Notes: generated from the letters alone by a model not told the origin. A stretch of 64,000 nucleotides of DNA from Isurus oxyrinchus (GCA_026770705.1 JANJGN010000052.1:1860001-1924000); one strand, 5' to 3'; shown: positions 1,984-34,390, counted from the first letter of the stretch. Program-made: numbers and translations.

Positions 1984-2023
1984 ATGATCGGGAAATCTTA
2001 CTTCCTCCTGTCACTTCTTCAAG
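1984..2023 (+). CDS. Signal-peptide exon, copy 1 (MIGKSYFLLSLLQ, phase 1)
   Basis: Acceptor tttcag at 1941, ATG at 1984, donor AG|GTAAT at 2024. Joins in frame to the V exons (..LLQ-VGLSQ..). Confidence 0.8.
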
Positions 2024-3744: not shown

Positions 3745-3784
3745 ATGATCGGGAAATCTTACTTCTTCCTGTCACTTTTCCAAG
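3745..3784 (+). CDS. Signal-peptide exon, copy 2 (MIGKSYFFLSLFQ, phase 1)
   Basis: Acceptor at 3702, ATG at 3745, donor GTAAT at 3785. 40 coding nt, as in copy 1. Confidence 0.8.
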
Positions 3785-11384: not shown

Positions 11385-11759
11385 TTGGACTATCACAAGT
11401 GTGGAAAGGTGACACTCCAGGAGAGGTGACAGCGCAGGAAGGTTCGTGTGTACAGATTCCATGTAATTACAGTTATCCATCATATTTAGTAGCGAGATCA
11501 CCAGTCGGAATCTGGTATATGAGAAGGAATTGGGAAAAATGGAATGAACGGTCTATAGCCTTTCACTCCAAGGATCATAATCGCGAGTTACCACAGTTCC
11601 ACCATCGGACCCAGCTGTCTGGAGACCTGAAAGATGGCGACTGTTCCCTGATTATAAACAACATCAGACGGGAAGATGCAGGATATTATTTATTCAGCCT
11701 AGAATTTGACAACAGGAATAGATACAACGACCGTCCTGAAACCCAGCTTCACGTTTCTG
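11385..11759 (+). CDS. Siglec-like V-set exon V1 (divergent; essential Arg replaced by Ser)
   Basis: 375 nt, phase 1-1, TAG|..G|GTAAGT. Siglec V signature AQEGSCVQIPC..W..LSGDLKDGDCSLII..EDAGYYLFSLE. Confidence 0.88.
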
Positions 11760-11984
11760 GTAAGTGCTGTGTTATAATTACTCAACAATTCACATCCAAC
11801 ACTCAATGGGAAATAATAGTGTTTGATTTGCTTGTTTTTTGGCCGTGTTAACCAGCGCCACTATTTTTAATGATTTGTCTATTTCTGCTCCCAGATCCAT
11901 AAGCTTATTGTGTGTGATTGAATCCACATCATAGCTGTAACATAAACCGAGCTGAGGGGTGATGACACCTCCCCCCTGAGTGAA

Positions 11985-13760
11985 GTATCTCCTCCCCACT
12001 ACACCTTCCACCCCTCACACTGTCCGTGTAAACCCCCGTCCCATCTCCAGCCTCTCTTTCCCCTCCAAAGTCCTGCAACCTGTTTCCATCTCCCGAATCT
12101 GTTCCCATCTTTCCCGGAACTCCATGTTTGAATCCCTCCAATCAGGTTCCCACCCCAGCCACTGTGCTGAAACAGCTCTTATCAAGGTCACAAATGGCAT
12201 CCTGTGTGACTGTGACAAAGGTCAACTTTCCCTCCTCGTCCTTCTCGATCTGTCTGCAGCCTTTGACACGCTCGACCACACCATCCTCCTCCAACACCTC
12301 TCCACTGTGGTCCAGCTGGGTGGGACTGCTCTCCCCTGGCTCCATTCTTATCCATCTCATCGTAGCCAGAGAATCACTTGCAATGGCTTTGCAGCATCAT
12401 CTGAACAGTGTTAGTTTTCACCTGTCCACTGAGGATCCCCAGCTCTACCTCACCACCACCTCTCTCGACTCCTCCACTGCTACTAAATTATCAGGCTGCT
12501 TATCCGACATCCAGTACTGGATGGGCAGAAATTCCCTCCAATTAAATATTGGAAAGACTGAAGCCATTGTCTTCATTCCCCGCTCCAAACTCTGTTCCCT
12601 CGCTACCAACTCCATTCCTCTCCCTGGCAGCTCTCTGAGATTGAAGCCAATCTGTTCACAGCTTTGTTGTCCCATTTGATCCTGAGATGAGCTTCCGGCC
12701 TCCTATCTGCGCCCTCACTAACACCGTCTATTTCCACCTCCGTAACATCGCACGACGTCACCCTGTCTCAGCTCATCTGCTGCTGAAACCCTCATCCACG
12801 CCTTCATTACCTCCAGTCTCGACTGTTCCAACACACGCTCTACACTCCATAAACTTGAGGCCATCCAAAACTGCTGACCACGTCCTTACTCACACCAAGT
12901 CCCGTTCCCTTATCACCCGCTCTGCTCGATGACCGAGACTGGCTCCTGGTCAAGCAAAATGTCAACGTCCAAATTTTCATCTTTGTTTCCTCACTATCCC
13001 TGTAATCTTCTCGTCCTCCTCCAGTACCTACAACCATCCCATTCTCTGTAACCTCTTCAAGCCTCTACCGCTTCCCTATATCTGTAAATTCATCCTGCCC
13101 CAACAAACCTACCAATCTCTGCAACCTCCTCCAGCCACTACAACCCTCCCTATTTCTGTAACTTCCTCCTGCCCCTAAAAGCTTCCCTATCTCTGTAGCC
13201 TGCTCCAGTCCCGACAACAATCCCTGCCTCTGTAACCTGCCCCAGTCACTACAACCCTCCCTACCTCTGCAAACTCCTCCAGACCCTACACTCTCCCAAT
13301 CTCTCTTAACTTTTCCAGCCCCTACAACCCTCCCTATCACTATAACTCCTCCAATCACTACAAACCTCGCTATCTCTGTAACCTCCTCCAGCCCCTACAA
13401 CCCTCCCTATCTCTGTAACCTCCTCCAGACCCACCAACCTTCAGAGGTCTCTGCGCTCCTCCAATTCCAGCCTCTTGACCATCCCCCGATCTCAACACTC
13501 TAACATTGGTGGCCATGCCTTCAGCTGCCTGGGGACCGAGCTCCGTAATACCCTCCCTTAAGCCCTCTCCATCCCTCACACTCACTCTCTCTCTCTCACT
13601 AACCATTTCATCCCTCTTTTAAGTTTCTCCATAACACCGATCCCTTCTGGTCAGCTGTCGCTAATATCTCCACATGTGTCTGGGTGACATACTTTGTTTT
13701 ATGACGCTCCTGTGTAGCACCTTGGGGTGATTTGTCATGTTAAAGTTGTTGTGAAAATAT
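11985..13760 (+). mobile_element. L2-clade LINE 3' fragment, including a 37-bp minisatellite (~13000-13440)
   Basis: FESLQSG..HCAETALIKVTNG..LVLLDLSAAFDTLDHTILL and CLSDIQYWMGRNSLQLNIGKTE. Confidence 0.8.
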
Positions 13761-14309
13761 AAGTTGTTGCCCTTTGACCCTCGACCCCAGATTGAGTCTT
13801 ATTTTTGAGGGAATGTACAACCTGCTTAGATTTCTGACCAAAGTGTCATTTGATTATTTTTATTGAGCGAATGCCAAGCCCCGATACCGAGCGAGAGCCT
13901 CCTCATTTGCTGAGTTCAAGGTGATGAGTCAGCCCCTTAGTCCGTAGAGGGGATTCTCCTCGGTAATGTACAGCCTTGTTTGTGTCTCTCCACAAGCGCA
14001 TGAGGGATTTGTACAGAGGCTGCAGCGCTGGAGGGGGTCTGCACAGGGGTCCTGGCCTGTCCTGAGCTGGTTTTAGCAAGGACCACTCTGGCCTTGGCAG
14101 CTGAAAGCCAGCCATTGGACAGACAGGGCCTGTCACAAGGAGCCTGTTAGTCACTCCCCCCCGTGTCTCCTGTGCTCGGATCCAGACCATGTTGGCTGGT
14201 GGATCTGGCTCAGGAAGGGTCCTCCCCATGGGACCCCCAGATGGAAGGTGGGTCGAGCGGGTCAGTCACTTGCATGTTTATTCTGCAGCTTTAATATTTT
14301 AAGAAGGTA

Positions 14310-15110
14310 AGAATGTAGGAACATAAGAAATAGGGACAGGAGCAGGCCATTCGGCCCCTCCAGCCTGCCCTCGCTGATCTGGTTGTGGCCTTAACTCCAT
14401 TTTCCTGCCTGTCCCCCAAACCCTTGACTCCCTTGTCGATCAAAAACCTGCCTCACTCAGCCTTGAGTCTATTCAATGGCCCAGCCTCCACTGCTCTCTG
14501 GGGAAGAGAATTCCACAGGCTAGCGCCCCTCTGAGAGAGGAAATTCCTCCTCATCTCAGTCTTAAATGGGAGAGTCCTCATTCCGAAACTGTGCTCCCTG
14601 GTTCTAGATTCCCCCACGAGGGGGAAACATCCTCCCAGCATCCACCCTGTCAAGCCCCCTCGGAATTGGATATGTTTCAATAAGGTCACCCCTCATTCTT
14701 CTAAACTCCAATGGATACAGGCCCAACCTGCTCAACATTTCCTCACAGGACAAACCCTTTAATCCCAGGAATCAGCCCAGTGAAGCTTCTCTGAACTGCC
14801 TGTACACAATGATCCTGTTACAATCTCACTAACGCCCTGTGCAGCTGTTGCAAGACTTCCCTCCTTTTATACTCCATCCCTTTGCAATAAAGGCCAACAT
14901 TCCACTTGCCTTCCTCATTCCGTGGTGTTCCTGAATGCTGACTTTCTGTGATTCATGTACAAGGACACCCAGATCCCTCTGTACTGCATTCTGCAGCCTG
15001 TCTCCATTTAAATAATATCCTGTTTTTCTATTCTTCCTGCCAAAATAATTTGTTGCCATTCTCCTCAGTATTGACCATCCCCCCAATTCAGCCTCATCTG
15101 TAAATTTTGA
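14310..15110 (-). mobile_element. CR1 LINE 3' fragment (repeated in each array unit)
   Basis: Minus-strand SKFTDEAELGG (cf. SKFADDTKLGG), YYLNGDRLQ..VQRDLGVLVHESQK and FKTEMRRNFLSQR. Confidence 0.85.
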
Positions 15111-15164
15111 GTCTAGTGGATCCACAAACCATCCAGAGATAAATATTGAGATTTCTCTCCCCAG

Positions 15165-15533
15165 TTGGACTGTCACAAGAGTGGAAAGGTGACACTCCAC
15201 GAGAGGTGACAGCTCAGGAAGGTTCGTGTGTACAGATTCCATGTCATTACAGTTATCCATCGTGTCTGGAAAACCAACCGCGAGGTGGACTCTGGTTTAA
15301 TAATGAGAAACAGATTCCCTGGGCTCCCATTGCCTTTCACTCCAAGGATCACAGTCACGAGTTACCACGGTTCCGCCATCGGACCCGGCTGTCTGGAGAC
15401 CTGAAAGATGGCGACTGTTCCCTGATTATAAACAACATCAGACGGGAAGATGCAGGACCTTATTTTTTCAGAATAGAATTTGACAATGGTCCGAGCCATA
15501 ACTATTACCCTGTAACCCAGCTTCACGTTTCTG
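15165..15533 (+). CDS. Siglec-like V-set exon V2 (type A loop NNEKQIPWAP; Arg present)
   Basis: 369 nt, open, phase 1-1, CAG|..G|GTAAGT. Contains YFFRIE. Confidence 0.88.
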
Positions 15534-17468
15534 GTAAGTGCTGTGTTATAATTACTCAACAATTCACATTCAACACTCAATGGGAATTAACACAAACTGT
15601 GACGTTTACATATTAACACAAAACACAGTTTATTATAACACACTGTCTGATTCTCAATAACCTGGTGATAGCTTCCAGTTCAGTCCTAAAGCAATGTCTA
15701 ATACTCACTTTAATATCAATGATTAAATGTGTTGACTGTGTCTATCAATGTTATCAGTTTATCCACTCCCATCAATCTCTCAAATCCTGTCTTGAAGTCT
15801 GACATATCGACAGAAGAAAGATTTACATTTCTACAGCGCCTTTCACCACCCTAGACTTCCCACCCTAAACCTCTCCCTCTCCCTCTTCCTCTCCCTCTCT
15901 CTCTCTCTCTCTCTGTCTCTTTCTCTCTGTCTCTCCATAACACCGACCTCTTCTGGTCAGCTGTCGCTAATATCTACACGTGTCTGGGTGACATACTTTG
16001 TTTTATGACGCTCCTGTGTAGCACCTTGAGGTGATTTGTCATGTTAAAGTTGTTGTGAAAATATAAGTTGTTGCCCTTTGACTCTCGACCCCAGATCGAG
16101 TCTTATTTTTGAGGGAATGTACAACCTCCTTAGATTTCTGACCAAAATGTCATTTGATTATTTTTATTGAGCGAATGCCAAGCCCCGATACCGAGCGAGA
16201 GCCTCCTCATTTGCCGAGTTTAGGGTGATGAGTCAGCCCCTTAGTCCGTAGAGGGGATTCTCCTCGGTAATGTACAGCCTTGTTTGTGTCTCTCCACAAG
16301 CGCATGAGGGGTTTGTACAGAGGCTGCAGCGCTGGAGGGGGTCTGCACAGGGGTCCTGGCCTGTCCTGAGCCGGTTTTAGCAAGGACCACTCTGGCCTTG
16401 GCAGCTGAAAGCCAGCCATTGGACAGACAGGGCCTGTCACAAGGAGCCTGTTAGTCACTCCCCCCCGTGTCTCCTGTGCTCGGATCCAGACCATGTTGGC
16501 TGGTGGATCTGGCTCAGGAAGGGTCCTCCCCATGGGACCCCCAGATGGAAAGTGGGTCGAGCGGGTCAGTCACTTGCATGTTTATTCTGCAGCTTTAATA
16601 TTTTAAGATGGTAAGAATGTAGGAACATAAGAAATAGGGACAGGAGCAGGCCATTCAGCCCCTCCAGCCTGCTCTCGCTGATCTGGTTGTGGCCTTAACT
16701 CCATTTTCCTGCCTGTCCCCCAAACCCTTGACTCTCTTGTCGATCAAAAACCTGCCTCACTCAGCCTTGAGTCTATTCAATGGCCCAGCCTCCACTGCTC
16801 TCTGGGGAAGAGAATTCCACAGGCTAGCGCCCCTCTGAGAGAGGAAATTCCTCCTCATCTCAGTCTTAAATGGGAGAGCCCTCATTCTGAAACTGTGCTC
16901 CCTGGTTCTAGATTCCCCCACGAGGGGGAAACATCCTCCCAGCATCCACCCTGTCAAGCCCCCTCGGAATCGGATATGTTTCAATAAGGTCACCCCTCAT
17001 TCTTCTAAACTCCAATGGATACAGGCCCAACCTGCTCAACATTTCCTCACAGGACAAACCCTTTAATCCCAGGAATCAGCCCAGTGAAGCTTCTCTGAAC
17101 TGCCTGTACACAATGATCCTGTTACAATCTCACTAACGCCCTGTGCAGCTGTTGCAAGACTTCCCTCCTTTTATACTCCATCCCTTTGCAATAAAGGCCA
17201 ACATTCCACTTGCCTTCCTCATTCCGTGGTGTTCCTGAATGCTGACTTTCTGTGATTCATGTACAAGGACACCCAGATCCCTCTGTACTGCATTCTGCAG
17301 CCTGTCTCCATTTAAATAATATCCTGTTTTTCTATTCTTCCTGCCAAAATAATTTGTTGCCATTCTCCTCAGTATTGACCATCCCCCCAATTCAGCCTCA
17401 TCTGTAAATTTTGAGTCTAGTGGATCCACAAACCATCCAGAGATAAATATTGAGATTTCTCTCCCCAG

Positions 17469-17837
17469 TTGGACTGTCACAAGAGTGGAAAGGTGACACT
17501 CCACGAGAGGTGACAGCTCAGGAAGGTTCGTGTGTACAGATTCCATGTCATTACAGTTATCCATCGTGTCTGGAAAACCAACCGCGAGGTGGACTCTGGT
17601 TTAATAATGAGAAACAGATTCCCTGGGCTCCCATTGCCTTTCACTCCAAGGATCACAGTCACGAGTTACCACGGTTCCGCCATCGGACCCGGCTGTCTGG
17701 AGACCTGAAAGATGGCGACTGTTCCCTGATTATAAACAACATCAGACGGGAAGATGCAGGACCTTATTTTTTCAGAATAGAATTTGACAATGGTCCGAGC
17801 CATAACTATTACCCTGTAACCCAGCTTCACGTTTCTG
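17469..17837 (+). CDS. Siglec-like V-set exon V3 (protein identical to V2)
   Basis: 369 nt, open, canonical splice sites. Confidence 0.88.
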
Positions 17838-19774
17838 GTAAGTGCTGTGTTATAATTACTCAACAATTCACATTCAACACTCAATGGGAATTAACACAAA
17901 CTGTGACGTTTACATATTAACACAAAACACAGTTTATTATAACACACTGTCTGATTCTCAATAACCTGGTGATAGCTTCCAGTTCAGTCCTAAAGCAATG
18001 TCTAATACTCACTTTAATATCAATGATTAAATGTGTTGACTGTGTCTATCAATGTTATCAGTTTATCCACTCCCATCAATCTCTCAAATCCTGTCTTGAA
18101 GTCTGTCATATCGACAGAAGAAAGATTTACATTTCTACAGCGCCTTTCACCACCCTAGACTTCCCACCCTAAACCTCTCCCTCTCCCTCTTCCTCTCCCT
18201 CTCTCTCTCTCTCTCTCTGTCTCTTTCTCTCTGTCTCTCCATAACACCGACCTCTTCTGGCCAGCTGTCGCTAATATCTCCACATGTGTCTGGGTGACAT
18301 ACTTTGTTTTATGACGCTCCTGTGTAGCACCTTGAGGTGATTTGTCATGTTAAAGTTGTTGTGAAAATATAAGTTGTTGCCCTTTGACTCTCGACCCCAG
18401 ATCGAGTCTTATTTTTGAGGGAATGTACAACCTCCTTAGATTTCTGACCAAAATGTCATTTGATTATTTTTATTGAGCGAATGCCAAGCCCCGATACCGA
18501 GCGAGAGCCTCCTCATTTGCCGAGTTTAGGGTGATGAGTCAGCACCTTAGTCTGTAGAGGGGATTCTCCTCGGTAATGAGCAGCCTTGTTTGTGTCTCTC
18601 CACAAGCGCATGAGGGGTTTGTACAGAGGCTGCAGCGCTGGAGGGGGTCTGCACAGGGGTCCTGGCCTGTCCTGAGCCGGTTTTAGCAAGGACAACTCTG
18701 GCCTTGGCAGCTGAAAGCCAGCCATTGGACAGACGGGGCCTGTCACAAGGAGCCTGTTAGTCACTCCCCACCGTGTCTCCTGTGCACGGATCCAGACCAT
18801 GTTGGCTGGTGGATCTGGCTCAGGAAGGGTCCTCCCCATGGGACCCCCAGATGGAAGGTGGGTCGAGCGGGTCATTCACTTGCATGTTTATTCTGCTGCT
18901 TTAATATTTTAAGAAGGTAAGAATGTAGGAACATAAGAAATAGGGACAGGAGCAGGCCATTCGGCCCCTCCAGCCTGCTCTCACTGATCTGGTTGTGGCC
19001 TTAACTCCATTTTCCTGCCTGTCCCCCAAACCCTTGACTCTCTTGTCGATCAAAAACCTGCCTCACTCAGCCTTGAGTCTATTCAATGGCCCAGCCTCCA
19101 CTGCTCTCTGGGGAAGAGAATTCCACAGGCTAGCGCCCCTCTGAGAGAGGAAATTCCTCCTCATCTCAGTCTTAAATGGGGGAGCCCTCATTCCGAAACT
19201 GTGCTCCCTGGTTCTAGATTCCCCCACGAGGGGGAAACATCCTCCCAGCATCCACCCTGTCAAGCCCCCTCGGAATCGGATATGTTTCAATAAGGTCACC
19301 CCTCATTCTTCTAAACTCCAATGGATACAGGCCCAACCTGCTCAACATTTCCTCACAGGACAAACCCTTTAATCCCAGGAATCAGCCCAGTGAAGCTTCT
19401 CTGAACTGCCTGTACACAATGATCCTGTTACAATCTCACTAACGCCCTGTGTAGCTGTTGCAAGACTTCCCTCCTTTTATACTCCATCCCTTTGCAATAA
19501 AGGCCAACATTCCACTTGCCTTCCTCATTCCGTGTTGTTCCTGAATGCTGACTTTCTGTGATTCATGTACCAGGACACCCAGATCCCTCTGTACTGCATA
19601 CTGCAGCCTGTCACCATTTAAATTATATCCTGTTTTTCTATTCTTCCTGACAATATAATTTATTGCCATTCTCCTCAGTATTGACCATCCCCCCAATTCA
19701 GCCTCATCTGTAAATATCGGGTTCAGTGGATCCACAAACCATTCAGAGTTAAATATTGAGATTTCTCTCCCCAG

Positions 19775-20140
19775 CTGAACCCTCACAAGAGTGGAAAGGT
19801 GACACTCCACGAGAGGTGACAGTGCAGGAAGGTTCCTGTGTACAGATTCCATGTCATTATAGTTATCCATCATGTCTGGAAAACCAACCGCGACGTGGAG
19901 TCTGGCTTAATAATGAGGAATGGAGAACATCGTCTATAGCCTTTCACTCCAAGGATCACAGTCACGAGTTACCACGGTTCCACCATCGGACCCGGCTGTC
20001 TGGAGACCTGAAAGATGGCGACTGTTCCCTGATTATAAACAACATCACATGGGAAGATGCAGGACCTTATTTTTTCAGAATAGAATTTGACAATGGTCCG
20101 AGCCATAACTATTACCCTGTAACCCAGGTTCACGTTTCTG
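19775..20140 (+). CDS. Siglec-like V-set exon V4 (type B loop NNEEWRTSS; Arg present)
   Basis: 366 nt, open, canonical splice sites. Confidence 0.88.
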
Positions 20141-22073
20141 GTAAGTGCTGTGTTATAATTACTCAACAATTCACATTCAACACTCAATGGGAATTAACAC
20201 AAACTGTGACGTTTACATATTAACACAAAACACAGTTTATTATAACACACTGTCTGATTCTCAATAACCTGGTGATAGCTTCCAGTTCAGTCCTAAAGCA
20301 ATGTCTAATACTCACTTTAATATCAATGATTAAATGTGTTGACTGTGTCTATCAATGTTATCAGTTTATCCACTCCCATCAATCTCTCAAATCCTGTCTT
20401 GAAGTCTGACATATCGACAGAAGAAAGATTTACATTTCTACAGCGCCTTTCACCACCCTAGACTTCCCACCCTAAACCTCTCCCTCTCCCTCTTCCTCTC
20501 CCTCTCTCTCTCTCTCTCTGTCTCTTTCTCTCTGTCTCTCCATAACACCGACCTCTTCTGGTCAGCTGTCGCTAATATCTACACGTGTCTGGGTGACATA
20601 CTTTGTTTTATGACGCTCCTGTGTAGCACCTTGAGGTGATTTGTCATATTAAAGTTGTTGTGAAAATATAAGTTGTTGCCCTTTGACTCTCGACCCCAGA
20701 TCGAGTCTTATTTTTGAGGGAATGTACAACCTCCTTAGATTTCTGACCAAAATGTCATTTGATTATTTTTATTGAGCGAATGCCAAGCCCCGATACCGAG
20801 CGAGAGCCTCCTCATTTGCCGAGTTTAGGGTGATGAGTCAGCACCTTAGTCTGTAGAGGGGATTCTCCTCGGTAATGAGCAGCCTTGTTTGTGTCTCTCC
20901 ACAAGCGCATGAGGGGTTTGTACAGAGGCTGCAGCGCTGGAGGGGGTCTGCACAGGGGTCCTGGCCTGTCCTGAGCCGGTTTTAGCAAGGACAACTCTGG
21001 CCTTGGCAGCTGAAAGCCAGCCATTGGACAGACGGGGCCTGTCACAAGGAGCCTGTTAGTCACTCCCCCCCGTGTCTCCTGTGCTCGGATCCAGACCATG
21101 TTGGCTGGTGGATCTGGCTCAGGAAGGGTCCTCCCCATGGGACCCCCAGATGGAAGGTGGGTCGAGCGGGTCAGTCACTTGCATGTTTTTTCTGCAGCTT
21201 TAATATTTTAAGAAGGTAAGAATGTAGGAACATAAGAAATAGGGACAGGAGCAGGCCATTCGGCCCCTCCAGCCTGCTCTCACTGATCTGGTTGTGGCCT
21301 TAACTCCATTTTCCTGCCTGTCCCCCAAACCCTTGACTCTCTTGTCGATCAAAAACCTGCCTCACTCAGCCTTGAGTCTATTCAATGGCCCAGCCTCCAC
21401 TGCTCTCTGGGGAAGAGAATTCCACAGGCTAGCGCCCCTCTGAGAGGGGAAATTCCTCCTCATCTCAGTCTTAAATGGGAGAGCCCTCATTCCGAAACTG
21501 TGCTCCCTGGTTCTAGATTCCCCCACGAGGGGGAAACATCCTCCCAGCATCCACCCTGTCAAGCCCCCTCGGAATCGGATATGTTTCAATAAGGTCACCC
21601 CTCATTCTTCTAAACTCCAATGGATACAGGCCCAACCTGCTCAACATTTCCTCACAGGACAAACCCTTTAATCCCAGGAATCAGCCCAGTGAAGCTTCTC
21701 TGAACTGCCTGTACACAATGATCCTGTTACAATCTCACTAACGCCCTGTGCAGCTGTTGCAAGACTTCCCTCCTTTTATACTCCATCCCTTTGCAATAAA
21801 GGCCAACATTCCACTTGCCTTCCTCATTCCGTGTTGTTCCTGAATGCTGACTTTCTGTGATTCATGTACCAGGACACCCAGATCCCTCTGTACTGCATAC
21901 TGCAGCCTGTCACCATTTAAATTATATCCTGTTTTTCTATTCTTCCTGACAATATAATTTATTGCCATTCTCCTCAGTATTGACCATCCCCCCAATTCAG
22001 CCTCATCTGTAAATATCGGGTTCAGTGGATCCACAAACCATTCAGAGTTAAATATTGAGATTTCTCTCCCCAG

Positions 22074-22439
22074 CTGAACCCTCACAAGAGTGGAAAGGTG
22101 ACACTCCACGAGAGGTGACAGTGCAGGAAGGTTCCTGTGTACAGATTCCATGTCATTATAGTTATCCATCATGTCTGGAAAACCAACCGCGACGTGGAGT
22201 CTGGCTTAATAATGAGGAATGGAGAACATCGTCTATAGCCTTTCACTCCAAGGATCACAGTCACGAGTTACCACGGTTCCACCATCGGACCCGGCTGTCT
22301 GGAGACCTGAAAGATGGCGACTGTTCCCTGATTATAAACAACATCACATGGGAAGATGCAGGACCTTATTTTTTCAGAATAGAATTTGACAATGGTCCGA
22401 GCCATAACTATTACCCTGTAACCCAGGTTCACGTTTCTG
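22074..22439 (+). CDS. Siglec-like V-set exon V5 (protein identical to V4)
   Basis: 366 nt, open, canonical splice sites. Confidence 0.88.
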
Positions 22440-24373
22440 GTAAGTGCTGTGTTATAATTACTCAACAATTCACATTCAACACTCAATGGGAATTAACACA
22501 AACTGTGACGTTTACATATTAACACAAAACACAGTTTATTATAACACACTGTCTGATTCTCAATAACCTGGTGATAGCTTCCAGTTCAGTCCTAAAGCAA
22601 TGTCTAATACTCACTTTAATATCAATGATTAAATGTGTTGACTGTGTCTATCAATGTTATCAGTTTATCCACTCCCATCAATCTCTCAAATCCTGTCTTG
22701 AAGTCTGACATATCGACAGAAGAAAGATTTACATTTCTACAGCGCCTTTCACCACCCTAGACTTCCCACCCTAAACCTCTCCCTCTCCCTCTTCCTCTCC
22801 CTCTCTCTCTCTCTCTCTGTCTCTTTCTCTCTGTCTCTCCATAACACCGACCTCTTCTGGTCAGCTGTCGCTAATATCTACACGTGTCTGGGTGACATAC
22901 TTTGTTTTATGACGCTCCTGTGTAGCACCTTGAGGTGATTTGTCATATTAAAGTTGTTGTGAAAATATAAGTTGTTGCCCTTTGACTCTCGACCCCAGAT
23001 CGAGTCTTATTTTTGAGGGAATGTACAACCTCCTTAGATTTCTGACCAAAATGTCATTTGATTATTTTTATTGAGCGAATGCCAAGCCCCGATACCGAGC
23101 GAGAGCCTCCTCATTTGCCGAGTTTAGGGTGATGAGTCAGCACCTTAGTCTGTAGAGGGGATTCTCCTCGGTAATGAGCAGCCTTGTTTGTGTCTCTCCA
23201 CAAGCGCATGAGGGGTTTGTACAGAGGCTGCAGCGCTGGAGGGGGTCTGCACAGGGGTCCTGGCCTGTCCTGAGCCGGTTTTAGCAAGGACAACTCTGGC
23301 CTTGGCAGCTGAAAGCCAGCCATTGGACAGACGGGGCCTGTCACAAGGAGCCTGTTAGTCACTCCCCCCCCGTGTCTCCTGTGCTCGGATCCAGACCATG
23401 TTGGCTGGTGGATCTGGCTCAGGAAGGGTCCTCCCCATGGGACCCCCAGATGGAAGGTGGGTCGAGCGGGTCAGTCACTTGCATGTTTTTTCTGCAGCTT
23501 TAATATTTTAAGAAGGTAAGAATGTAGGAACATAAGAAATAGGGACAGGAGCAGGCCATTCGGCCCCTCCAGCCTGCTCTCACTGATCTGGTTGTGGCCT
23601 TAACTCCATTTTCCTGCCTGTCCCCCAAACCCTTGACTCTCTTGTCGATCAAAAACCTGCCTCACTCAGCCTTGAGTCTATTCAATGGCCCAGCCTCCAC
23701 TGCTCTCTGGGGAAGAGAATTCCACAGGCTAGCGCCCCTCTGAGAGGGGAAATTCCTCCTCATCTCAGTCTTAAATGGGAGAGCCCTCATTCCGAAACTG
23801 TGCTCCCTGGTTCTAGATTCCCCCACGAGGGGGAAACATCCTCCCAGCATCCACCCTGTCAAGCCCCCTCGGAATCGGATATGTTTCAATAAGGTCACCC
23901 CTCATTCTTCTAAACTCCAATGGATACAGGCCCAACCTGCTCAACATTTCCTCACAGGACAAACCCTTTAATCCCAGGAATCAGCCCAGTGAAGCTTCTC
24001 TGAACTGCCTGTACACAATGATCCTGTTACAATCTCACTAACGCCCTGTGCAGCTGTTGCAAGACTTCCCTCCTTTTATACTCCATCCCTTTGCAATAAA
24101 GGCCAACATTCCACTTGCCTTCCTCATTCCGTGTTGTTCCTGAATGCTGACTTTCTGTGATTCATGTACCAGGACACCCAGATCCCTCTGTACTGCATAC
24201 TGCAGCCTGTCACCATTTAAATTATATCCTGTTTTTCTATTCTTCCTGACAATATAATTTATTGCCATTCTCCTCAGTATTGACCATCCCCCCAATTCAG
24301 CCTCATCTGTAAATATCGGGTTCAGTGGATCCACAAACCATTCAGAGTTAAATATTGAGATTTCTCTCCCCAG

Positions 24374-24739
24374 CTGAACCCTCACAAGAGTGGAAAGGTG
24401 ACACTCCACGAGAGGTGACAGTGCAGGAAGGTTCCTGTGTACAGATTCCATGTCATTATAGTTATCCATCATGTCTGGAAAACCAACCGCGACGTGGAGT
24501 CTGGCTTAATAATGAGGAATGGAGAACATCGTCTATAGCCTTTCACTCCAAGGATCACAGTCACGAGTTACCACGGTTCCACCATCGGACCCGGCTGTCT
24601 GGAGACCTGAAAGATGGCGACTGTTCCCTGATTATAAACAACATCACATGGGAAGATGCAGGACCTTATTTTTTCAGAATAGAATTTGACAATGGTCCGA
24701 GCCATAACTATTACCCTGTAACCCAGGTTCACGTTTCTG
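24374..24739 (+). CDS. Siglec-like V-set exon V6 (protein identical to V4)
   Basis: 366 nt, open, canonical splice sites. Confidence 0.88.
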
Positions 24740-26673
24740 GTAAGTGCTGTGTTATAATTACTCAACAATTCACATTCAACACTCAATGGGAATTAACACA
24801 AACTGTGACGTTTACATATTAACACAAAACACAGTTTATTATAACACACTGTCTGATTCTCAATAACCTGGTGATAGCTTCCAGTTCAGTCCTAAAGCAA
24901 TGTCTAATACTCACTTTAATATCAATGATTAAATGTGTTGACTGTGTCTATCAATGTTATCAGTTTATCCACTCCCATCAATCTCTCAAATCCTGTCTTG
25001 AAGTCTGACATATCGACAGAAGAAAGATTTACATTTCTACAGCGCCTTTCACCACCCTAGACTTCCCACCCTAAACCTCTCCCTCTCCCTCTTCCTCTCC
25101 CTCTCTCTCTCTCTCTCTGTCTCTTTCTCTCTGTCTCTCCATAACACCGACCTCTTCTGGTCAGCTGTCGCTAATATCTACACGTGTCTGGGTGACATAC
25201 TTTGTTTTATGACGCTCCTGTGTAGCACCTTGAGGTGATTTGTCATATTAAAGTTGTTGTGAAAATATAAGTTGTTGCCCTTTGACTCTCGACCCCAGAT
25301 CGAGTCTTATTTTTGAGGGAATGTACAACCTCCTTAGATTTCTGACCAAAATGTCATTTGATTATTTTTATTGAGCGAATGCCAAGCCCCGATACCGAGC
25401 GAGAGCCTCCTCATTTGCCGAGTTTAGGGTGATGAGTCAGCACCTTAGTCTGTAGAGGGGATTCTCCTCGGTAATGTGCAGCCTTGTTTGTGTCTCTCCA
25501 CAAGCGCATGAGGGGTTTGTACAGAGGCTGCAGCGCTGGAGGGGGTCTGCACAGGGGTCCTGGCCTGTCCTGAGCCGGTTTTAGCAAGGACCACTCTGGC
25601 CTTGGCAGCTGAAAGCCAGCCATTGGACAGACGGGGCCTGTCACAAGGAGCCTGTTAGTCACTCCCCCCCCGTGTCTCCTGTGCTCGGATCCAGACCATG
25701 TTGGCTGGTGGATCTGGCTCAGGAAGGGTCCTCCCCATGGGACCCCCAGATGGAAGGTGGGTCGAGCGGGTCAGTCACTTGCATGTTTATTCTGCAGCTT
25801 TAATATTTTAAGAAGGTAAGAATGTAGGAACATAAGAAATAGGGACAGGAGCAGGCCATTCAGCCCCTCGAGCCTGCTCTTGCTGATCTGGTTGTGGCCT
25901 TAACTCCATTTTCCTGCCTGTCCCCCAAACCCTTGACCCCCTTGTCGATCAAAAACCTGCCTCACTCAGCCTTGAGTCTATTCAATGGCCCAGCCTCCAC
26001 TGCTCTCTGGGGAAGAGAATTCCACAGGCTAGCGCCCCTCTGAGAGAGGAAATTCCTCCTCATCTCAGTCTTAAATGGGGGAGCCCTCATTCCGAAACTG
26101 TGCTCCCTGGTTCTAGATTCCCCCACGACGGGGAAACATCCTCCCAGCATCCACCCTGTCAAGCCCCCTCGGAATCGGATATGTTTCAATAAGGTCACCC
26201 CTCATTCTTCTAAACTCCAATGGATACAGGCCCAACCTGCTCAACATTTCCTCACAGGACAAACCCTTTAATCCCAGGAATCAGCCCAGTGAAGCTTCTC
26301 TGAACTGCCTGTACACAATGATCCTGTTACAATCTCACTAACACCCTGTGCAGCTGTTGCAAGACTTCCCTCCTTTTATACTCCATCCCTTTGCAAAAAA
26401 GGCCAACATTCCACTTGCCTTCCTCATTCCGTGGTGTTCCTGAATGCTGACTTTCTGTGATTCATGTACAAGGACACCCAGATCCCTCTGTACTGCATTC
26501 TGCAGCCTGTCTCCATTTAAATAATATTCTGTTTTTCTATTCTTCCTGCCAAAATAATTTGTTGCCATTCTCCTCAGTATTGACCATACCCCCAATTCAG
26601 CCTCATCTGTAAATTTTGAGTCTAGTGGATCCACAAACCATCCAGAGATAAATATTGAGATTTCTCTCCCCAG

Positions 26674-27042
26674 TTGGACAGTCACATGAGTGGAAAAGTG
26701 ACACTCCACGAGAGGTGACAGCGCAGGAAGGTTCGTGTGTACAGATTCCATGTCATTACAGTTATCCATCGTGTCTGGAAAACCAACCGCGAGGTGGAGT
26801 CTGGTTTAATGACGAGAAACAGATTCCCTGGGCTCCCATTGCCTTTCACTACAAGGATCACAGTCACGAGTTACCACAGTTCCACCATCGGACCCGGCTG
26901 TCTGGAGACCTGAAAGATGGCGACTGTTCCCTGATTATAAACAACATCAGACGGGAAGATGCAGGACCTTATTTTTTCAGGATAGAATTTGACAATGGTC
27001 CGAGCCATAACTATTACCCTGTAACCCAGCTTCACGTTTCTG
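26674..27042 (+). CDS. Siglec-like V-set exon V7 (type A variant; Arg present)
   Basis: 369 nt, open, canonical splice sites. Loop reads NDEKQIPWAP. Confidence 0.88.
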
Positions 27043-28353
27043 GTAAGTGCTGTGTTATAATTACTCAACAATTCACATCCAACACTCAATGGGAAATAAC
27101 ACAAACTGTGACGTTTACACATTAACACAAAACACAGCTTATTATAACACACTGTCTGATTCTCAATAACCTGGTGATAGCTTCCAGTTCAGTCCTAAAG
27201 CAACCTCTAATACTCACTTTAATATCAATGATTAAATGTATTGACTGTGTCCATCAATGTTATCAGGTTATCCACTCCCATCAGTCTACCTAATGCTTTT
27301 TAAATGTCTAACAATTTGACAAAAGAAGGATGTGCATTCCTATAGCGCCTTACACCACCTCAGCAAACTTCAAATCATTTCACAGAAAATGAAGAAATTC
27401 TTGAAGTATAGTCACTAACGTGGCAGTGAGTTTGTGCACAGGAAGATCCCACAGAGAGCAATGGGATCAGTGACCCAGATCTCTGAGAGAATGATGAGCC
27501 AGGGTTCCATGAGCTGTGGACTGCTCCATCACCCACACCCCAGTGTTGGCAATTCAAGGGTCTGGGAGTGAAAGTGTATTCAGCTCAGTGACACATTCCC
27601 CACCAAGTTTGAAAATAGGAAAGTTGCTGCTGATTGTTGTAACCTCTCAGTTCCCATCTCATTCTTGGAAACCTGCTTTCAAAATACAAAAGCAATTCTC
27701 GCATTTCCATAGCGCCTTTCAATACCTCAGGATGATCCTAAATCGATTCACAGCCAATGAAGTGATTCTTGAAGCACACATTCTCCCCACTCTCTGGGTA
27801 AAGAAGTTCCTCCTGAATTCCCCATTGGATTTATTAGTGAGGATGTTATATTGTCAGCCTCTGGTTTTGTTCATTGTGAGGAGTGGAAACACTCTCTCCA
27901 TGTCTACTCGATCAAAACCTTTCACTACTTCAAAGGTCAAATGAGGTCACCCCTCAACCTTCTCTGTTCACGGGAACAGAGACCCAGCCTGTACATCCTC
28001 TCCTGATAGGTAAAGCCTCACATTGCTGAGATCATCCTTGTGAAGCTTTTTACCACCCTCTCCAGTGTCTCTATATTCTTTTCCAAATGCTGAGTCTGTT
28101 CTCCCCGAGCTGTGAGCTGTTCCTCCACCCTCACCCAGTCTGGTCAAATCAAGGGTCACTGAGTGAGAGTGTATTAATCTGAGTGACAGAGATTCAACAA
28201 GTGTAAAAATAGACAATTCTTTAATGATCATTGTAACCTCTCAGTTCTGATATCATCCTTGTAAAAGTGCTTTCTCGTGTGGGACTGTGGTTTCTATTTG
28301 AACTGATGCTTCACGTTATATTTCTCTAAAAGGATCCATTCTCTGTGTGTTAG

Positions 28354-28650
28354 ATTTCACAGATAAACCCACGATATTCCCTGCTGAAATTATTGCAGGA
28401 AAGCGTGTGGATGTAAGCTGCACCTTCAACACAACGTGCAATGGAACAGCAGCACCTGTCTTAACCTGGGACACTCCCACTGACGTACCTGGATCAGTCT
28501 CAAACACTGTAACTCAGCATGGTGTCACTCTGACCTATACTTCTGTTCTGACCCTGATCCCATCACTCAAACACCACGGACACACTCTCAGCTGCAGAGT
28601 GAGATATCCATCTGTTTCATCGGAGCGGACCCTCGTACTAACTGTGCAAG
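28354..28650 (+). CDS. Gene A C2-set Ig exon 1 (DFTDKP...LVLTVQ)
   Basis: 297 nt, phase 1-1. SCTFNTTC carries the extra Cys typical of Siglec domain 2, which pairs with the V-domain Cys; LSCRV. Confidence 0.9.
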
Positions 28651-28823
28651 GTAAGTACAAACACCCTTCATTCTACATTAGCTGGAATAGTATCAAATGT
28701 GCACAGCAAGCTCCCACATCCTGCACTTTGTTTATAAACAAACCATTGGTGTTTAACTGGGAAAAAGTGACCCCTGACAGGCAGTACATCCTTACTACTG
28801 ACTCTCCGACAGTGCATCATGGA

Positions 28824-30550
28824 CTCATAGACTCATAGACACTTACAGGACAGAAGGAGGCCATTTAGCCCATCATGTCCATTCTGGTCAGCAACTCCCT
28901 CCCCAAGTGCATCACCTCACACTTTTCCAGGTTGAAGTCCATTTGCGTCGTGATCATTCCCCCTATATTTACGTCCAATTCATTTATATACACCACAAAC
29001 AGCAAGTGCCCCAGCACTGAGCCCTGTGGAACCCCACTGGAAACAGACATCCAGTCACAGAAACATCCCTCCACCATCACCCTCTGCTTCCTGCCTCAGC
29101 CAATATTGGATCCAACGTGCCACTTTGCCTTGGATCCCATGGGCTCTTACTTTCTTGGCCTCTCTGCCAAGAGGCACCTTATCAAAAGCCTTCCTCAGCC
29201 CATGTCGACCACATCAAAGGCATTACTCTCATCAACACTCCTGGTTACCTCCTCAAAAGATTTGATCAGGTTTGTCAAACATGACCTTCCCTTAACAAAT
29301 CCGTGCTGAATATCCCAGATTAATCCTTGTCTCTCCCAGTGCAGATTCATTCTGTCCTTCAGAATTCTTACTAGTAACTTCCCCACCACCGAGGTTAGAC
29401 TGACTGGCCTGTAATTTCCTGATCTATCCCTTCCTCCCTTTTTTAATAATGGGACAACATTAGCCATCCTGCAGTCCTCTGGCACCTCACCTGTGGCCAG
29501 AGAGGATTTGAAAATTACTGCCAGGGCCCCTGATATCTCTCCCCTTGCCTCCCTCAACAGCTTTGGATTCATCTCATCTGGGCTTGTGGATTTATCCACT
29601 TTTCAGGCCGCTAAACCCACTAGTACCTCCTCTCTCTGTGTTAATTTCCTCTCATATTTCACTGTCCTCCACCCTGATGTTATACCTGCATCATCCTTTT
29701 CCATTGCGAAGACTGATGCAAAGTATTCATTGAGGACTGTACCCACGTCTTCCAGGTCCACACACACATTACCTCGATGGTCCCTAATCAGCCCCACTCT
29801 TTCCCGAGTTATTCTCCTGCTCTTTACATATTTAAAAAACCCCTCTGGGTTTTGCTTTATTCTACCCACCAGTGCTTTCTCATGCACTCTCTTATCTTTC
29901 CTAATGTCCTTTTTCAGTTCCCCTCTGCACTATTTATACTCCTCTAGGGACTCTGCTGTATTGAGCCCTCAGTATCTGCCATAAGCTTCTCTTTTTTCTC
30001 AATCCAAACCTTTATGTTCCTTGTCTTCCAGGGTTCTCCAGACTTGGTCTCCCTCTTTGTCTTTGCAGGAAGATATCTGCTCTGTACTCTCGCTATTCCC
30101 TCCTTGAATGCCTCCCACTGCTCTGACACAGTTTTATCTGCAAAGAGCTTCTCCCAGTCCACTTGGGCCCAATCATATCTCATCTTAGTAAAATTAGCCT
30201 TTCCCCAGTTTAGAATTTTTATTCCCAGCACAAACTTATCCTTCTCCATAACTGTCCTAAATCCAATTGAGTTCCAGTCACTATCTCCCCTACTGATACG
30301 CTTTCCAACTTCCCCGGCGCTTTTCCATATATTAGGTCCAGAACTGTCCCCTCCCTTGTTGAGCTTTCTATGCACAGGCTAAAAATCTTCTCCTGGATGC
30401 AACTTCAGAATTTTTCTCCCTCCCTACCTTGCTCACTAAAGCTGTCCCAGTTAATATTTGGGTAGCTAAAATCCCTGAGTATTACTGCTTTGTTATTCTT
30501 ACACATCTCTGAAATGTGATCACATGTTGGATTGTCCATCTCTCCCTGAC
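28824..30550 (-). mobile_element. CR1 LINE ORF2 fragment
   Basis: NWGKANF, IKQNPEGFFKYV, ANVVPLLKKG..GNYRPVSLTSVVGKLL, QHGFVKGRSCLTNL, GVPQGSVLG. Confidence 0.9.
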
Positions 30551-30636
30551 TGTTTGTTGGTTTTATATCTTGAGTCTATGAGTTCACTGGTTGATTAAAT
30601 TCGAATTGCACTCCTTCACATACACTTGTTAGTTGA

Positions 30637-30840
30637 TAAAAACAAAAAAACTGCGGATGCTGGAAATCCAAAACAAAAACAGAATTACCTGGAAAAACTC
30701 AGCAGGTCTGGCAGCATCGGCGGAGAAGAAAAGTGTTGACGTTTCGAGTCCTCATGACCTCAGTTCTGTCAAAGGGTCATGAGGACTCGAAACATCAACT
30801 CTTTTCTTCTCCCCCGATGCTGCCAGACCTGTTGAGTTAT
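30637..30840. mobile_element. Penelope-like element terminal fragment with inverted repeat
   Basis: ctgcggatgctggaaatcc..cagcaggtctggcagcatcgg..gacgtttcgagtcctcatgacc followed by its reverse complement. Related pieces at 43735-43870, 48665-48765 and 55748-55900. Confidence 0.6.
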
Positions 30841-31109
30841 TCTTAGCTGATGCTCGCTATCAATAACCAAGAGAGACCGACATTAGAACAAGCTGATTAT
30901 TTATTGTAACAGAGGGCAGAGCACTAAATCCTTGCCTGCTCCCACAGCCACCTCCAGCTCTAGACTTACAGTTAACCAGTGGCCCACACTGTCCAGTGAT
31001 TGGTCAGTACTGTCACATGGTTTATCCACTTGTATTCTCTTAAAGGTACCTGGCACTCCACATTATCACAGGAGGCCTATAGTACACACATAACAGCGTT
31101 TTTGCCTCC

Positions 31110-31450
31110 TCAGCACTGACCCTTCTACAGTGCAGCACTCCCTCATTACTGTCTCTCTAATAGTATAATGATCCCTCAGTAGTGCTCCTCCAACATTGCA
31201 CTGGTCAATCAGAACTGACGCTCTGACTGTGCAGTTTTACCTCAGCAGTAACCCTCCTACAGTGCAGCACTCCCACAGTACTGTCCCTCCTACAGTGCTG
31301 CACTCCCTCAGGACTGACCCTCTGACAGTGCAGCACTCCCTCAGCACTGAACCTCTGGCAGTGCAGCACTCCCTCAGTACTGACTCTCTGACAGTGCAGC
31401 ACTCCCTCAGTACTGACCCTCTGACAGTGCAGCACGCCCTCAATACTGAA
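31110..31450 (+). repeat. 33-bp minisatellite (CCCTCCGACAGTGCAGCACTCCCTCAGTACTGA-type)
   Basis: Tandem degenerate copies. Confidence 0.85.
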
Positions 31451-31581
31451 CTGAAGTGTCTGCCTGGATTACGGACTATGTGGTGAAAGAACCTACATTG
31501 ACATCACACCTTTCACATTCTCAGTGTCTTTCAAAGTGCTTCACAGTCAGTGTAAGTTAACTGATCTGTATTTGTTTTTAG

Positions 31582-31863
31582 ACGCACCACGGAATCTCTC
31601 AATTACTTCTCCAGATATGATTAACGCTTCATCGATCAATATAATTGAGGGGAATTCTACAGTGATAATCTGCTCTGTCGAGAGCTTCCCAGCTTCTAAC
31701 CTGATGTGGCGACATCTTAATGTCCCAATGAACAGAACAAGTTCCAACAATGAGCTGTGGTTGGTGATTCCTCACGTTACATCCAGGGATACTGGAGAAT
31801 ATCAGTGTGTGGCAGAGAATGAACATGGAGCAGTGGAGGGGTTCCTAACCATTACTGTGGAAT
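31582..31863 (+). CDS. Gene A C2/I-set Ig exon 2 (DAPRNLSI...LTITVE)
   Basis: 282 nt, phase 1-1, TAG|..T|GTGAGT. IICSVESFPAS..W..DTGEYQCVAENEHG. Confidence 0.9.
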
Positions 31864-33528
31864 GTGAGTGTACACAGACTTTAAAATTTCTCTCATCTCC
31901 GAACACATATACTCAGATGCTCTCCCACGCACACACACACAAGCACTCACAAATGTACAGACCCAAAGTGCATGCACACACACAATCCCACACTCATGAG
32001 CACACAGAAAGACACACTCACACACAAACTCAGTACTGCACTGGAGAGTTCTCCTGGATTCTGGGATATGTGTTCCCATTCATATTTATCGAAGAATATC
32101 CAAATTACAAAGTGTATTCCAGAAACTCACATGCACAAAGATTCCAACTGATACTCCCCACCTCTCTGTGTATCTCTCTCTTCCTTTAAGAAGCTTCCTA
32201 ATCCGTAACTCTTGCCTGTCCTAACTCCTCCTTATAAGTCCCTGTGTCAAATTTTTTGTGTATCTGAGAGAAAGGGAGAGATAAGGAAGTTTAGGAAGGG
32301 ATTTCCTGTTAGTGAAGAGCTTACTTCTTTTTCTCACCTTTCCAGTGTTCAGTTTTGCCATCATGTCCAATGACCCTGTTTATAATGGGGGCATCCTATG
32401 TAAACGTCACACTGTCTTTACATCCTCCCATCAGTGGTGGCACTGTGGTGCTTAAGCTTGCACCTCCCAGCTTTTCAGCCAACTTCACTTCACAATTTGC
32501 TACATATGGTGTAAGTTCATCGAAATTAACATATATCAAATGGTAGATTTGATAATACAGTTTATTGAAAGGTTCATCCGCGCTCTGGGAAGGGTTTACA
32601 CTCTCCAGGAAGCAGGAATAGGCTGGATGTTGGGGAGTTCATCTTTTCCCAGAGAGTAGGGATCCTCGGGAATGTGCTGTCAGTGGGTGTGGTGGTTGCT
32701 GTCTCTCTGTCACCTTCAAGAGGGATCTGGAGTGGTTACTGACTGGGGGAGAGATCATGGAAGCGGAGAATGATACAGCACAGGAGGAGGCCATTCAGCC
32801 CATTGTGCCTGTGCCAGGTCTTTCAATGTTCTATCCAATCAGATCCACTAACCACCACTCCACTTTGCCCCCATCTTCTTCCTTCAAGTGTTTATCCAAT
32901 TTCCCATTTGAAAGTTCCTGTTGAATCTGCTTCCACTGCCCTTTCAGGCAGCACCTTCCAGATCACAACAACTCGCTCTGTCAAAACAAATTCTCCTCAT
33001 CTCCCCCTCCGGTTCATCAATCTGTGTCCCTCTGGTTACCGACCCTCCTGCCCCTTAAATACATCGATACTGTTCACCTCGACCACTCCCAGTGGGAGCG
33101 AGTTCCACATTCTCCCCTCTCTCTGGGTAAAGATTGGAACTGTTTATTAAGCGGGGGGTGTAAGTTCATGGGGGAGTCCATCTCGATCCTGCTTGATTTG
33201 CACACGCGTCCGAGATGGATTTCCACCCTGCACTAAACGTTTCCAGAATTTTCTACAGCACAATCCTGTACACAGCGATGGAGAGAAACATTGGACAGGG
33301 AGTCCAACAGCACAATGATCCATTCTCACCAATGTTCCACGCTAAGGGGAAAGTTCCGATTGTCCACTCTTAGAGTGTTTACAATGAAAACATTCATTCC
33401 ACATTGAATCCCAGTGGATGGGTCAATATTACAGCAAATGTTGCAGTGATATGAAGCTTGATTGTTCAGCCAGAGTGAGAGATTGAAAGCGGAGAGTCAG
33501 TGATGATTTCTTTCTGTGTGTTCTCTAG

Positions 33529-33668
33529 ACAGTGGAGGAGAGATTCTGCACGTGATCCTGATCCTGGGAATACGAGCTGTGATATTCCTTGTGGCTGTGG
33601 TTATCACTATCGCTGGAGTCTGTGTCTGGGAGAGACAAACAGTGAAAGGAAGTCGACAGACTGTTTGA
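33529..33668 (+). CDS. Gene A TM + short tail exon: (Y)SGGEILHVILILGIRAVIFLVAVVITIAGVCVWERQTVKGSRQTV*
   Basis: Acceptor ttctctag at 33528, phase 1 in frame with C2 exon 2. Hydrophobic stretch with CGA (Arg) at 33573-33575, stop TGA at 33666-33668. Confidence 0.85.
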
Positions 33669-33769: not shown

Positions 33770-34390
33770 TTCGTATCAGAGAGGCATTCCAGCACAGTGG
33801 GAGCCCATTGAGCCCATTGAGTCCATGCTGTCTCTCTGTAGAGCAATCCAGTCAGTCCCATTCCCCCGCTCTATCCCTGTATCCCTGTGAGTTTATTTCC
33901 CCTCAAGTGTCCATCCAATTTCCTTTTGAAATCGTTCATCGTCTCCACTTCCACCATCCTCGTAGGCAGCGAATTCCAGCTCATTACCACTTGCTGTGGA
34001 GAAAAGTTCGTCCTCACATCCCCCTCTGCCCAAAACCTTCAATCTGTGTCCCCCAGTCCTTGTACCATCAGCTAATGGCAACAGCTTGTCTTTGTCTACA
34101 TTATCTAAACCCATCATCATCTTGTACACCTCGATCAGATCCCCCCTCAATCTCCTTTGCTCCAAGGAGAACAACCCCAGCTTCTCCAACCCAACCTTGT
34201 AGCTAAAATCCCTCATCCCTGGACCCATTCTGCTCAATCTCCTCCCCACCCTCTCAAGGACCCTCACTTCCTTCCCAAAGTGGGGAGACCAGAACTGGAC
34301 ACAATATTCTAGTTGTGACCTAACCAGAGCTTTATAAATGTTCAGCATAACCTCCCTGTGTTTGTATTCAATCCCTCGATTTATGAAAAG
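33770..34390 (-). mobile_element. CR1 3' fragment, antisense, in the putative 3' UTR of gene A
   Basis: YKALVRSQLEYCVQFWSP..LGLFSLEQRRLRGDLIEVYK. Duplicate at ~46805-47420. Confidence 0.85.

Follow-up and report, generated by a model that had tools for sequence, protein, structure and literature searches.

Known Multi-V Siglecs and Tandem Immunoglobulin Exons

Siglecs are presented in textbooks as one-headed lectin receptors, in which an arginine (Arg) of strand F is essential for sialic acid binding. Their cysteines (Cys) comprise an intrasheet pair between strands B and E and an extra B-strand Cys, which bonds the matching extra Cys of the C2 domain. A basic residue in the transmembrane (TM) helix, combined with a short tail, typically identifies activating receptors that couple to an adaptor. 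In arthropod Dscam, which harbours clusters of tandem duplicated immunoglobulin-domain exons, exactly one exon per cluster is retained by docking/selector RNA pairing. Here, we describe a Siglec-like gene, referred to as gene A, of the shark Isurus oxyrinchus, located in a stretch of 64,000 nucleotides (GCA_026770705.1, JANJGN010000052.1:1860001-1924000; hereafter the window, counted from its first letter and devoid of any N). In this gene, seven V-set exons precede a single C2a-C2b-TM set, and we consider it probable that they are joined in series into an activating poly-V receptor of the Siglec-like type, possibly subject to exon skipping.

The maximum described among mammalian Siglecs is two V-set domains, found in SIGLEC12, and the first V-set of the human protein has lost the essential Arg (R122C) (PMC6288428). 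Gene A resembles primate SIGLEC12 (Siglec-XII) in possessing more than one N-terminal V-set in series and a first V-set without the essential Arg, replaced here by Ser. However, it has seven V-sets instead of two, and SIGLEC12 is inhibitory, with an immunoreceptor tyrosine-based inhibitory motif (ITIM), whereas gene A codes for a TM arginine and no signalling tail. Orthology with mammalian SIGLEC12 is unlikely, the resemblance being one of domain count only, and the NCBI name 'Siglec-12' given to shark models likewise reflects nothing but domain count. Sialoadhesin (Siglec-1) also has a very long ectodomain, thought to lift the binding site past the cell's own sialic acids, but it owes this length to 16 C2-set spacers that follow its only V, whereas the domains added in gene A are V-sets of the lectin type. 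The closest parallel to the membrane anchor is provided by the activating, DAP12-coupled Siglec-14, -15 and -16, which share with gene A a charged TM residue, a very short tail and ectodomain exons nearly identical to those of inhibitory paralogues. With regard to the Dscam clusters, the likeness lies in the tandem duplicated exons within one gene; unlike them, the V exons appear here to be joined to one another, and no convincing docking system was found in the window.

A prior interpretation of the window, drawn from the nucleotide sequence alone (hereafter the sequence-only reading), had called this architecture unusual for the family. This holds in comparison with mammalian Siglecs (PMC6288428) but not within sharks and rays, where automatic genome annotation shows the same layout, including a seven-V model in the basking shark. 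A search of the literature on shark, cartilaginous fish and elasmobranch Siglecs yielded no description of poly-V Siglecs.

Gene Layout

Exons were searched by a script combining an acceptor pattern, TCTCTCCC[CT]AG, with the donor G/GTAAGT (the slash marking the exon border), and were then searched singly. The gene was delineated as follows.

1984..2023, + strand: leader copy 1, MIGKSYFLLSLLQ, donor G/GTAATA; 13/13 residues identical in tblastn with shark Siglec-like proteins, sequence read
3745..3784, + strand: leader copy 2, MIGKSYFFLSLFQ, inside the second promoter and leader module (3300-3924)
11385..11759, + strand: V1, 375 nt, older first-type V-set, YYLFSLEF, without the YPSC cysteine
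15165..15533, + strand: V2, 369 nt, internal-type V-set with GLSQ start, YPSC and YFFRIEF
17469..17837, + strand: V3, 369 nt, exon identical to V2, flanking intron differing from that of V2 at 48 sites
19775..20140, + strand: V4, 366 nt, internal-type, AEPSQ start, other C-C' loop
22074..22439, + strand: V5, 366 nt, exon identical to V4
24374..24739, + strand: V6, 366 nt, exon identical to V4
26674..27042, + strand: V7, 369 nt, last V, 94% amino acid identity to V2
28354..28650, + strand: C2a, 297 nt, phase 1/1, Pfam C2-set_2 with an extra TTC cysteine; both borders set by RNA contigs, splice sites read
31582..31863, + strand: C2b, 282 nt, phase 1/1, Ig_3/I-set
33529..33668, + strand: last (TM) exon, DSGGEILHVILILGIRAVIFLVAVVITIAGVCVWERQTVKGSRQTV then stop

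The script recovered the seven V exons, all open, in phase 1/1 and of a length divisible by 3, with a common acceptor, TTTCTCTCCC(C/T)AG, and the donor G/GTAAGT; each of the seven exceeds the Pfam gathering score for V-set and Ig_CD22. It thereby reproduced the core of the sequence-only reading, namely, seven intact phase-1/1 V exons with AG/GT sites ahead of one C2a-C2b-TM set, and since all lengths are multiples of 3 in the same phase, any subset of V exons stays in frame, as had been proposed. The translations agree with the four V types distinguished earlier: V1, V2 and V3 (same translation), V4, V5 and V6 (same translation), and V7. The two product sizes put forward were also recovered, at 375 amino acids for a single-V isoform (13+123+99+94+46) and 1112 for the all-V isoform (13+125+3x123+3x122+99+94+46). 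With either leader copy, all eleven coding exons from the leader through V1 to the TM exon are open and have intact splice sites.

With regard to the leader, tblastn with shark Siglec-like proteins (E<=10) placed MIGKSYFLLSLLQ-like sequences only at 1984, 3745 and 41996 in the window, and none inside the V array, in agreement with the claim that no leader separates the V exons. The two promoter and leader modules of gene A (1500-2163 and 3300-3924), 1.76 kb apart, share about 88% identity with one another and with the corresponding module of a downstream paralogue (paralogue C, described below). They precede V1 by 7.6-9.4 kb, and no V exon lies in between.

A Young Tandem Array of V Exons

V2 to V7 are held in a tandem array (13563..27359, + strand) of six units of about 2.3 kb (2299-2306 bp), each consisting of an intron of about 1.6 kb, the V exon, and an intron of about 0.3 kb. 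Since these six units are 95-100% identical, introns included, the pattern is far beyond chance. The upstream border of the array is a CT microsatellite, which recurs at each unit border, and the six internal V exons share 92.6-100% nucleotide identity among themselves. The stretch 19453-25476 (6.0 kb, V4-V6) is a perfect-period repeat of 2299/2300 bp interrupted by a single 1-nt indel; outside this tract, the units differ mutually at 11-72 intronic sites.

V1 lies outside the array, with 82% nucleotide and 71% amino acid identity to V2 and a synonymous divergence (dS) of about 0.2-0.27, and the 263 nt preceding it show homology to the intron between leader and V in paralogue C. From this position, divergence and upstream homology, V1 is the original leader-proximal V, much older than the array copies. 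In a tree of V domains, V1 clusters with the first-position V of Cetorhinus and Carcharodon (100/99 support), and V4-6 cluster weakly with the AEPSQ-type V of Cetorhinus.

The V2/3 and V4-6 exons are separated by 27 substitutions in 366 positions (7.4%), whereas their flanks differ by 0-2%. The block of differences extends from about 240 nt upstream of the exon to exon position 356, and more than half of the substitutions (14/27), as well as one 3-nt indel, are concentrated in exon positions 119-166, which correspond to the C-C' loop in an alignment to Siglec-7. Because the exon dS among array V (0.04-0.12, and 0.11 between V2/3 and V4-6) exceeds the intron divergence (0-2%), and the ratio of nonsynonymous to synonymous divergence (dN/dS) is 0.44-0.73, the difference between the types suggests an exon patch that is older, or was imported, within homogenised flanks, and not the outcome of positive selection.

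The introns are filled with open reading frame (ORF) fragments resembling reverse transcriptases of the long interspersed nuclear element (LINE) type, at 12128-12932, 14829-15260 (and in each unit), 29195-30375, 33893-34438, 47045-47470 and 50115-51483. In the array, each V exon is preceded, at about 100 nt, by one such fragment in antisense orientation, which was co-amplified with it.

Siglec Features and Membrane Anchor

Gene A is a real member of a large elasmobranch Siglec-like family. V2-V7 carry the Siglec motif YFFRIEF, the Arg of which aligns with that of Siglec-5 and Siglec-7, whereas V1 has Ser in place of the essential Arg (YYLFSLEF) and departs from the Siglec motif at this residue. 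The closest Protein Data Bank (PDB) sequences to V2 are Siglec-5, -7, -8, CD33, MAG and Siglec-10 (E 1e-15 for Siglec-5, -7, -8 and CD33), and V2 aligns with the PDB Siglecs over the motifs QEGxCVxxPC, NCSL and YFFRxE. The Siglec cysteine pattern is present in every V (CVQIPC...GDCSL) and in C2a (VSC..TTC..LSC). With respect to the fold, the nearest natural protein with two V is Cetorhinus P0170, and its AlphaFold2 model (predicted local distance difference test score of 80.5) resembles CD33, Siglec-10 and MAG in their V-C2 structures.

The TM helix contains an arginine (LILGIRAVIF...) and is followed by WERQTVKGSRQTV and a stop, leaving a tail of 13 residues without signalling motifs. The last exon is therefore predicted to be of the activating-receptor type, and the same TM exon type ends the S. 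torazame models P0157, P0006 and P0083. Judged from such sequence features, the gene product may bind sialic acid, couple to an adaptor, form the expected disulfides and gain avidity.

RNA Contigs

RNA evidence was gathered from four probable RNA runs of four studies, all in the form of assembled contigs, aligned on 24300-30299 at >=93% identity. The contigs stem from this or a very close species, and the family has many paralogues. A joint from the V donor to C2a (27041->28353, GT..AG) occurs in all four runs, one contig fits the V7-to-C2a sequence at 257/258 bases, and loose contig ends at 28649/28650 coincide with the 3' border of C2a.

Junctions between V exons were observed in run X15, in which three contigs carry TTCACGTTTCT (+G), the last bases of a V exon, immediately before the V6 acceptor. 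These contigs contain a V-to-V junction onto a V4-6-type acceptor. All of them break right after the single C/G site that separates donors of the V1/V2/V3/V7 type from those of the V4-6 type. Because a k-mer assembly stops where two donor types enter one junction, both types would feed the V4-6 acceptor.

At least one contig joins C2a directly to the TM exon, skipping C2b. Another contig, from X15, leaves C2a (28649) and continues into a C2 exon of the YKPEISQQSE type, which in the relatives P0165 and P0171 occurs together with a tail bearing ITIM and immunoreceptor tyrosine-based switch motifs. Since C2a, at >=93% identity, runs into this inhibitory-type exon, activating and inhibitory paralogues share near-identical ectodomain exons. 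Summed contig depth is roughly equal over V6-type, V7-type and C2a in three runs of organism B, which is weak evidence; the X15 depth of about 3 : 1.6 : 1 (V6-type : V7-type : C2a), being summed over hundreds of paralogue contigs, was not used. Joints from 26768/26770 to 24538/24531 were considered as back-splicing and set aside, as they most plausibly reflect a third loop variant, the contigs of which aligned in two parts.

Poly-V Relatives and the Cysteine Rule

The relatives of gene A were taken from RefSeq (Gnomon) models of sharks and rays, in which the following numbers of V domains occur in series.

Carcharodon P0165: 2
Cetorhinus P0002: 2
Cetorhinus P0170: 2
Mustelus P0162: 3
S. canicula P0158: 4
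Hypanus P0003: 4
Mobula model: 4
S. torazame P0157 ('pIgR-like'): 5 full and a partial sixth, same activating TM exon
Cetorhinus maximus LOC144671591 (P0265): 7

These models belong to the same family as gene A (60-94% amino acid identity per V), and like it they combine a first-type V, internal V with an extra Cys, and C2a. The V number is the same in Cetorhinus, and the TM exon is the same in S. torazame. Gene A itself shows the full set of marks by which poly-V members are recognised, i.e., a leader, a first-type V without YPSC, internal V with YPSC, and C2a. In contrast, the V domains of the relatives are mutually diverged, and Cetorhinus alternates first-type and internal-type V, whereas the identities within the array point to a very recent amplification in Isurus. 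The Cetorhinus gene has at least 24 isoforms, and the 15 examined all retain the seven V. However, its model takes in an entire single-V inhibitory gene (leader-V-C2a-TM-tail) from upstream, linked by translated 5' sequence to the seven-V gene, and its end reads through into an intron; the fusion is a sign of read-through transcripts or of model merging in these clusters. A protein search with the V4 exon alone returned only three short Carcharodon/Rhincodon models, and none from the source species.

The extra Cys of the internal V domains follows a positional rule. V2-V7 carry it as a fourth cysteine (YPSC) and V1 does not. Among 246 V domains in 176 fetched relatives, YPSC was present in 31/46 of the V following another V, compared with 1/74 of the first V of multi-V proteins and 2/126 of the single V. 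The YPSC cysteine lies 7 residues past the B-strand cysteine, and the extra cysteine of C2a lies 6 residues past its own. V1 with n internal V and C2a amounts to 3+4n+3 cysteines, an even number, while splicing of the leader directly to an internal V leaves one unpaired. Such a parity would fit a stacking of V domains and disfavour a choice of one in seven.

Neighbouring Paralogues

Two further copies lie downstream of gene A in the window.

38578-40298: paralogue fragment B, internal-type V (YPSC) with an in-frame stop and Arg replaced by Ser (FFSIKF), then a C2a 97% identical to that of gene A
41996-42034: paralogue C, leader
42896-43295: paralogue C, single V with a frameshift near the 3' end; YPAH, without the extra cysteine
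44116-44427: paralogue C, C2a
44520-44912: paralogue C, C2b-like, diverged (54%)
46562-46701: paralogue C, TM exon, first 28 nt the same as in gene A, translation identical

Neither a leader nor a TM exon was found that belongs to fragment B. Paralogue C, spanning 41996-46701, is probably a pseudogene with one V. A 33-nt minisatellite (consensus ACAGTGCAGCACTCCCTCAGTTCAGACCCTCCA) also recurs in introns and spacers across the cluster, at 31108-31449, 35094-35999, about 40460-41290 and about 48100-48870, and yields long spurious ORFs reading PPTVQHSLSSD.

A Probable Chained Receptor and the Competing Explanations

The sequence-only reading had left two options, a Dscam-like choice among V domains and a long poly-V sensor. 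The latter accords with all the evidence considered, namely, RNA contigs in which one V exon is spliced to another, the cysteine signature of the internal V, and the elasmobranch RefSeq models with 2 to 7 V. Direct support extends to the exon anatomy, the repeat structure, the Siglec features of sequence and fold, the V-V and V-C2a RNA junctions, and the existence of poly-V relatives, and from these an all-V product of this very locus may be predicted. We can propose that the ancestral layout comprised a leader, a first V, an internal V, C2a, C2b, and a TM exon coding for an arginine within the membrane and for hardly any tail, a combination typical of activating receptors that signal through a separate adaptor. 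In this shark, a 2.3-kb piece, made of the internal V exon and its intron flanks, has been amplified to six copies, probably by unequal exchange, because one border lies in a CT microsatellite; the two versions of the C-C' loop stem from a patch that covers the exon and its surroundings over about 600 bp. Since all copies keep the same strong splice sites and phase, splicing in series would be the default and would join V1 to up to six internal V, perhaps with some skipping. The product would be a long rod with up to six domains (V2-V7) bearing the arginine-containing Siglec motif, in which the extra cysteine of each internal V would accept the interdomain bond that in ordinary Siglecs runs from V to C2.

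A number of observations weigh against a chained receptor made from this locus. The junctions cannot be tied to it, because the contigs align at >=93%, the family has many paralogues, and one contig enters the YKPEISQQSE exon, which is absent from the window; with paralogues mixed in the contigs, neither the V-V nor the V-C2a junction is proven for gene A. No V6-to-V7 joint is present among the 15 joints listed of 60. The poly-V models of the relatives are automatic predictions, and that of Cetorhinus is fused and ends in read-through. The shared ancestry of all internal V limits the weight of the cysteine rule, and the array copies are too young for their intactness to tell of selection, of which a positive form left no signal among the V exons. 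Given the intronic differences and the two exon types outside the perfect tract, at least five units are distinct, but the V count is to be read as 5-7, since the number of copies in that tract rests on the long reads of the assembly. Lastly, the loss of the V1 arginine and the two broken paralogue neighbours mean that the gene could be on its way out.

Several of these points feed other explanations. Skipping of most copies in a real array, which we regard as unlikely, would give a main product with two V (V1 and one internal) or one V, the extra exons being young, near-neutral passengers or occasional cassettes. It would be in line with the two V of the closest lamniform models (P0165, P0002 and P0170), with the missing V6-to-V7 joint and, weakly, with the even depth in the organism-B runs, and the C2b-less contig indicates that exon skipping occurs in the family. 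Yet the acceptor, the donor and about 1.9 kb of flanking intron are identical in all copies, which leaves no sequence reason to prefer one of them; furthermore, the X15 contigs join V to V at the V4-6-type acceptor, and the seven-V Cetorhinus gene keeps every V in 15/15 examined isoforms. An over-expansion in the assembly, with fewer than seven real V exons and a near-perfect repeat written too often, is improbable. The perfect 2299/2300-bp period of 19453-25476, with its single 1-nt indel over V4-V6, is in its favour. Against it, a false expansion would give identical copies, and the other units differ at 11-72 intronic sites and include two exon types; relatives with 5-7 V models also speak against it.

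Decay of the whole locus, as the product of a recent duplication that fell out of use like its two broken neighbours, appears quite improbable. The arginine-less V1, the in-frame stop of copy B, the V-exon frameshift of copy C, and an expression that is not proven to be locus-specific would all be in keeping with it. However, none of the eleven coding exons, the older V1, C2a, C2b and TM exons among them, has lost its open frame or its splice sites, and one RNA contig matches the V7-to-C2a sequence at all but one of its 258 bases. Least probable of all is a mutually exclusive choice of exactly one of the seven V per transcript, in the manner of Dscam, although tandem alternative-looking exons coding for four protein types may call it to mind. 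The search for docking and selector sequences retrieved only one weak, 22-nt match of 86% complementarity, between 12670-12691, in the V1-V2 intron outside the array, and one site per unit (14550, 16854, 19160, 21459, 23759 and 26059), about 600 nt upstream of each array V. This complementarity is probably homology between transposable elements, both arms lying in LINE-like sequence of opposite orientation. Moreover, the copies would share an identical 'selector', the exons remain in frame in any number, the introns are long (1.9 kb) and U2-type with identical splice signals, 6/7 of the single choices would bypass V1 and leave the number of cysteines odd, and the relatives chain their V domains. 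The V-to-V junction of the RNA contigs, which is not specific to this locus, likewise argues against it, and the Dscam-like option of the sequence-only reading is thus disfavoured.

Implications for Siglec-Like Receptors in Sharks

The weight of the finding is lowered by the fact that the layout is widespread in shark and ray annotation. What is particular to Isurus is the young amplification, together with the combination of six arginine-bearing V, an arginine-less V1 and an activating anchor. As the units are 95-100% identical including introns, exon amplification is caught here almost in the act, making the locus a good case for following the splicing of new in-frame exons and the reuse of an interdomain disulfide. 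A chained receptor, having up to seven V-set domains per chain and an intact motif in six, would offer a natural test of avidity and reach. A further and rather speculative idea, to which we give a low probability, is that the V array acts as a dial of length and valency, set by unequal exchange between individuals and by skipping between transcripts, with the two C-C' loops mixed along a disulfide-stapled rod. If this were true, one activating gene would give rise to graded, multivalent glycan sensors of mixed specificity, a form of innate-lectin diversification not described for Siglecs.

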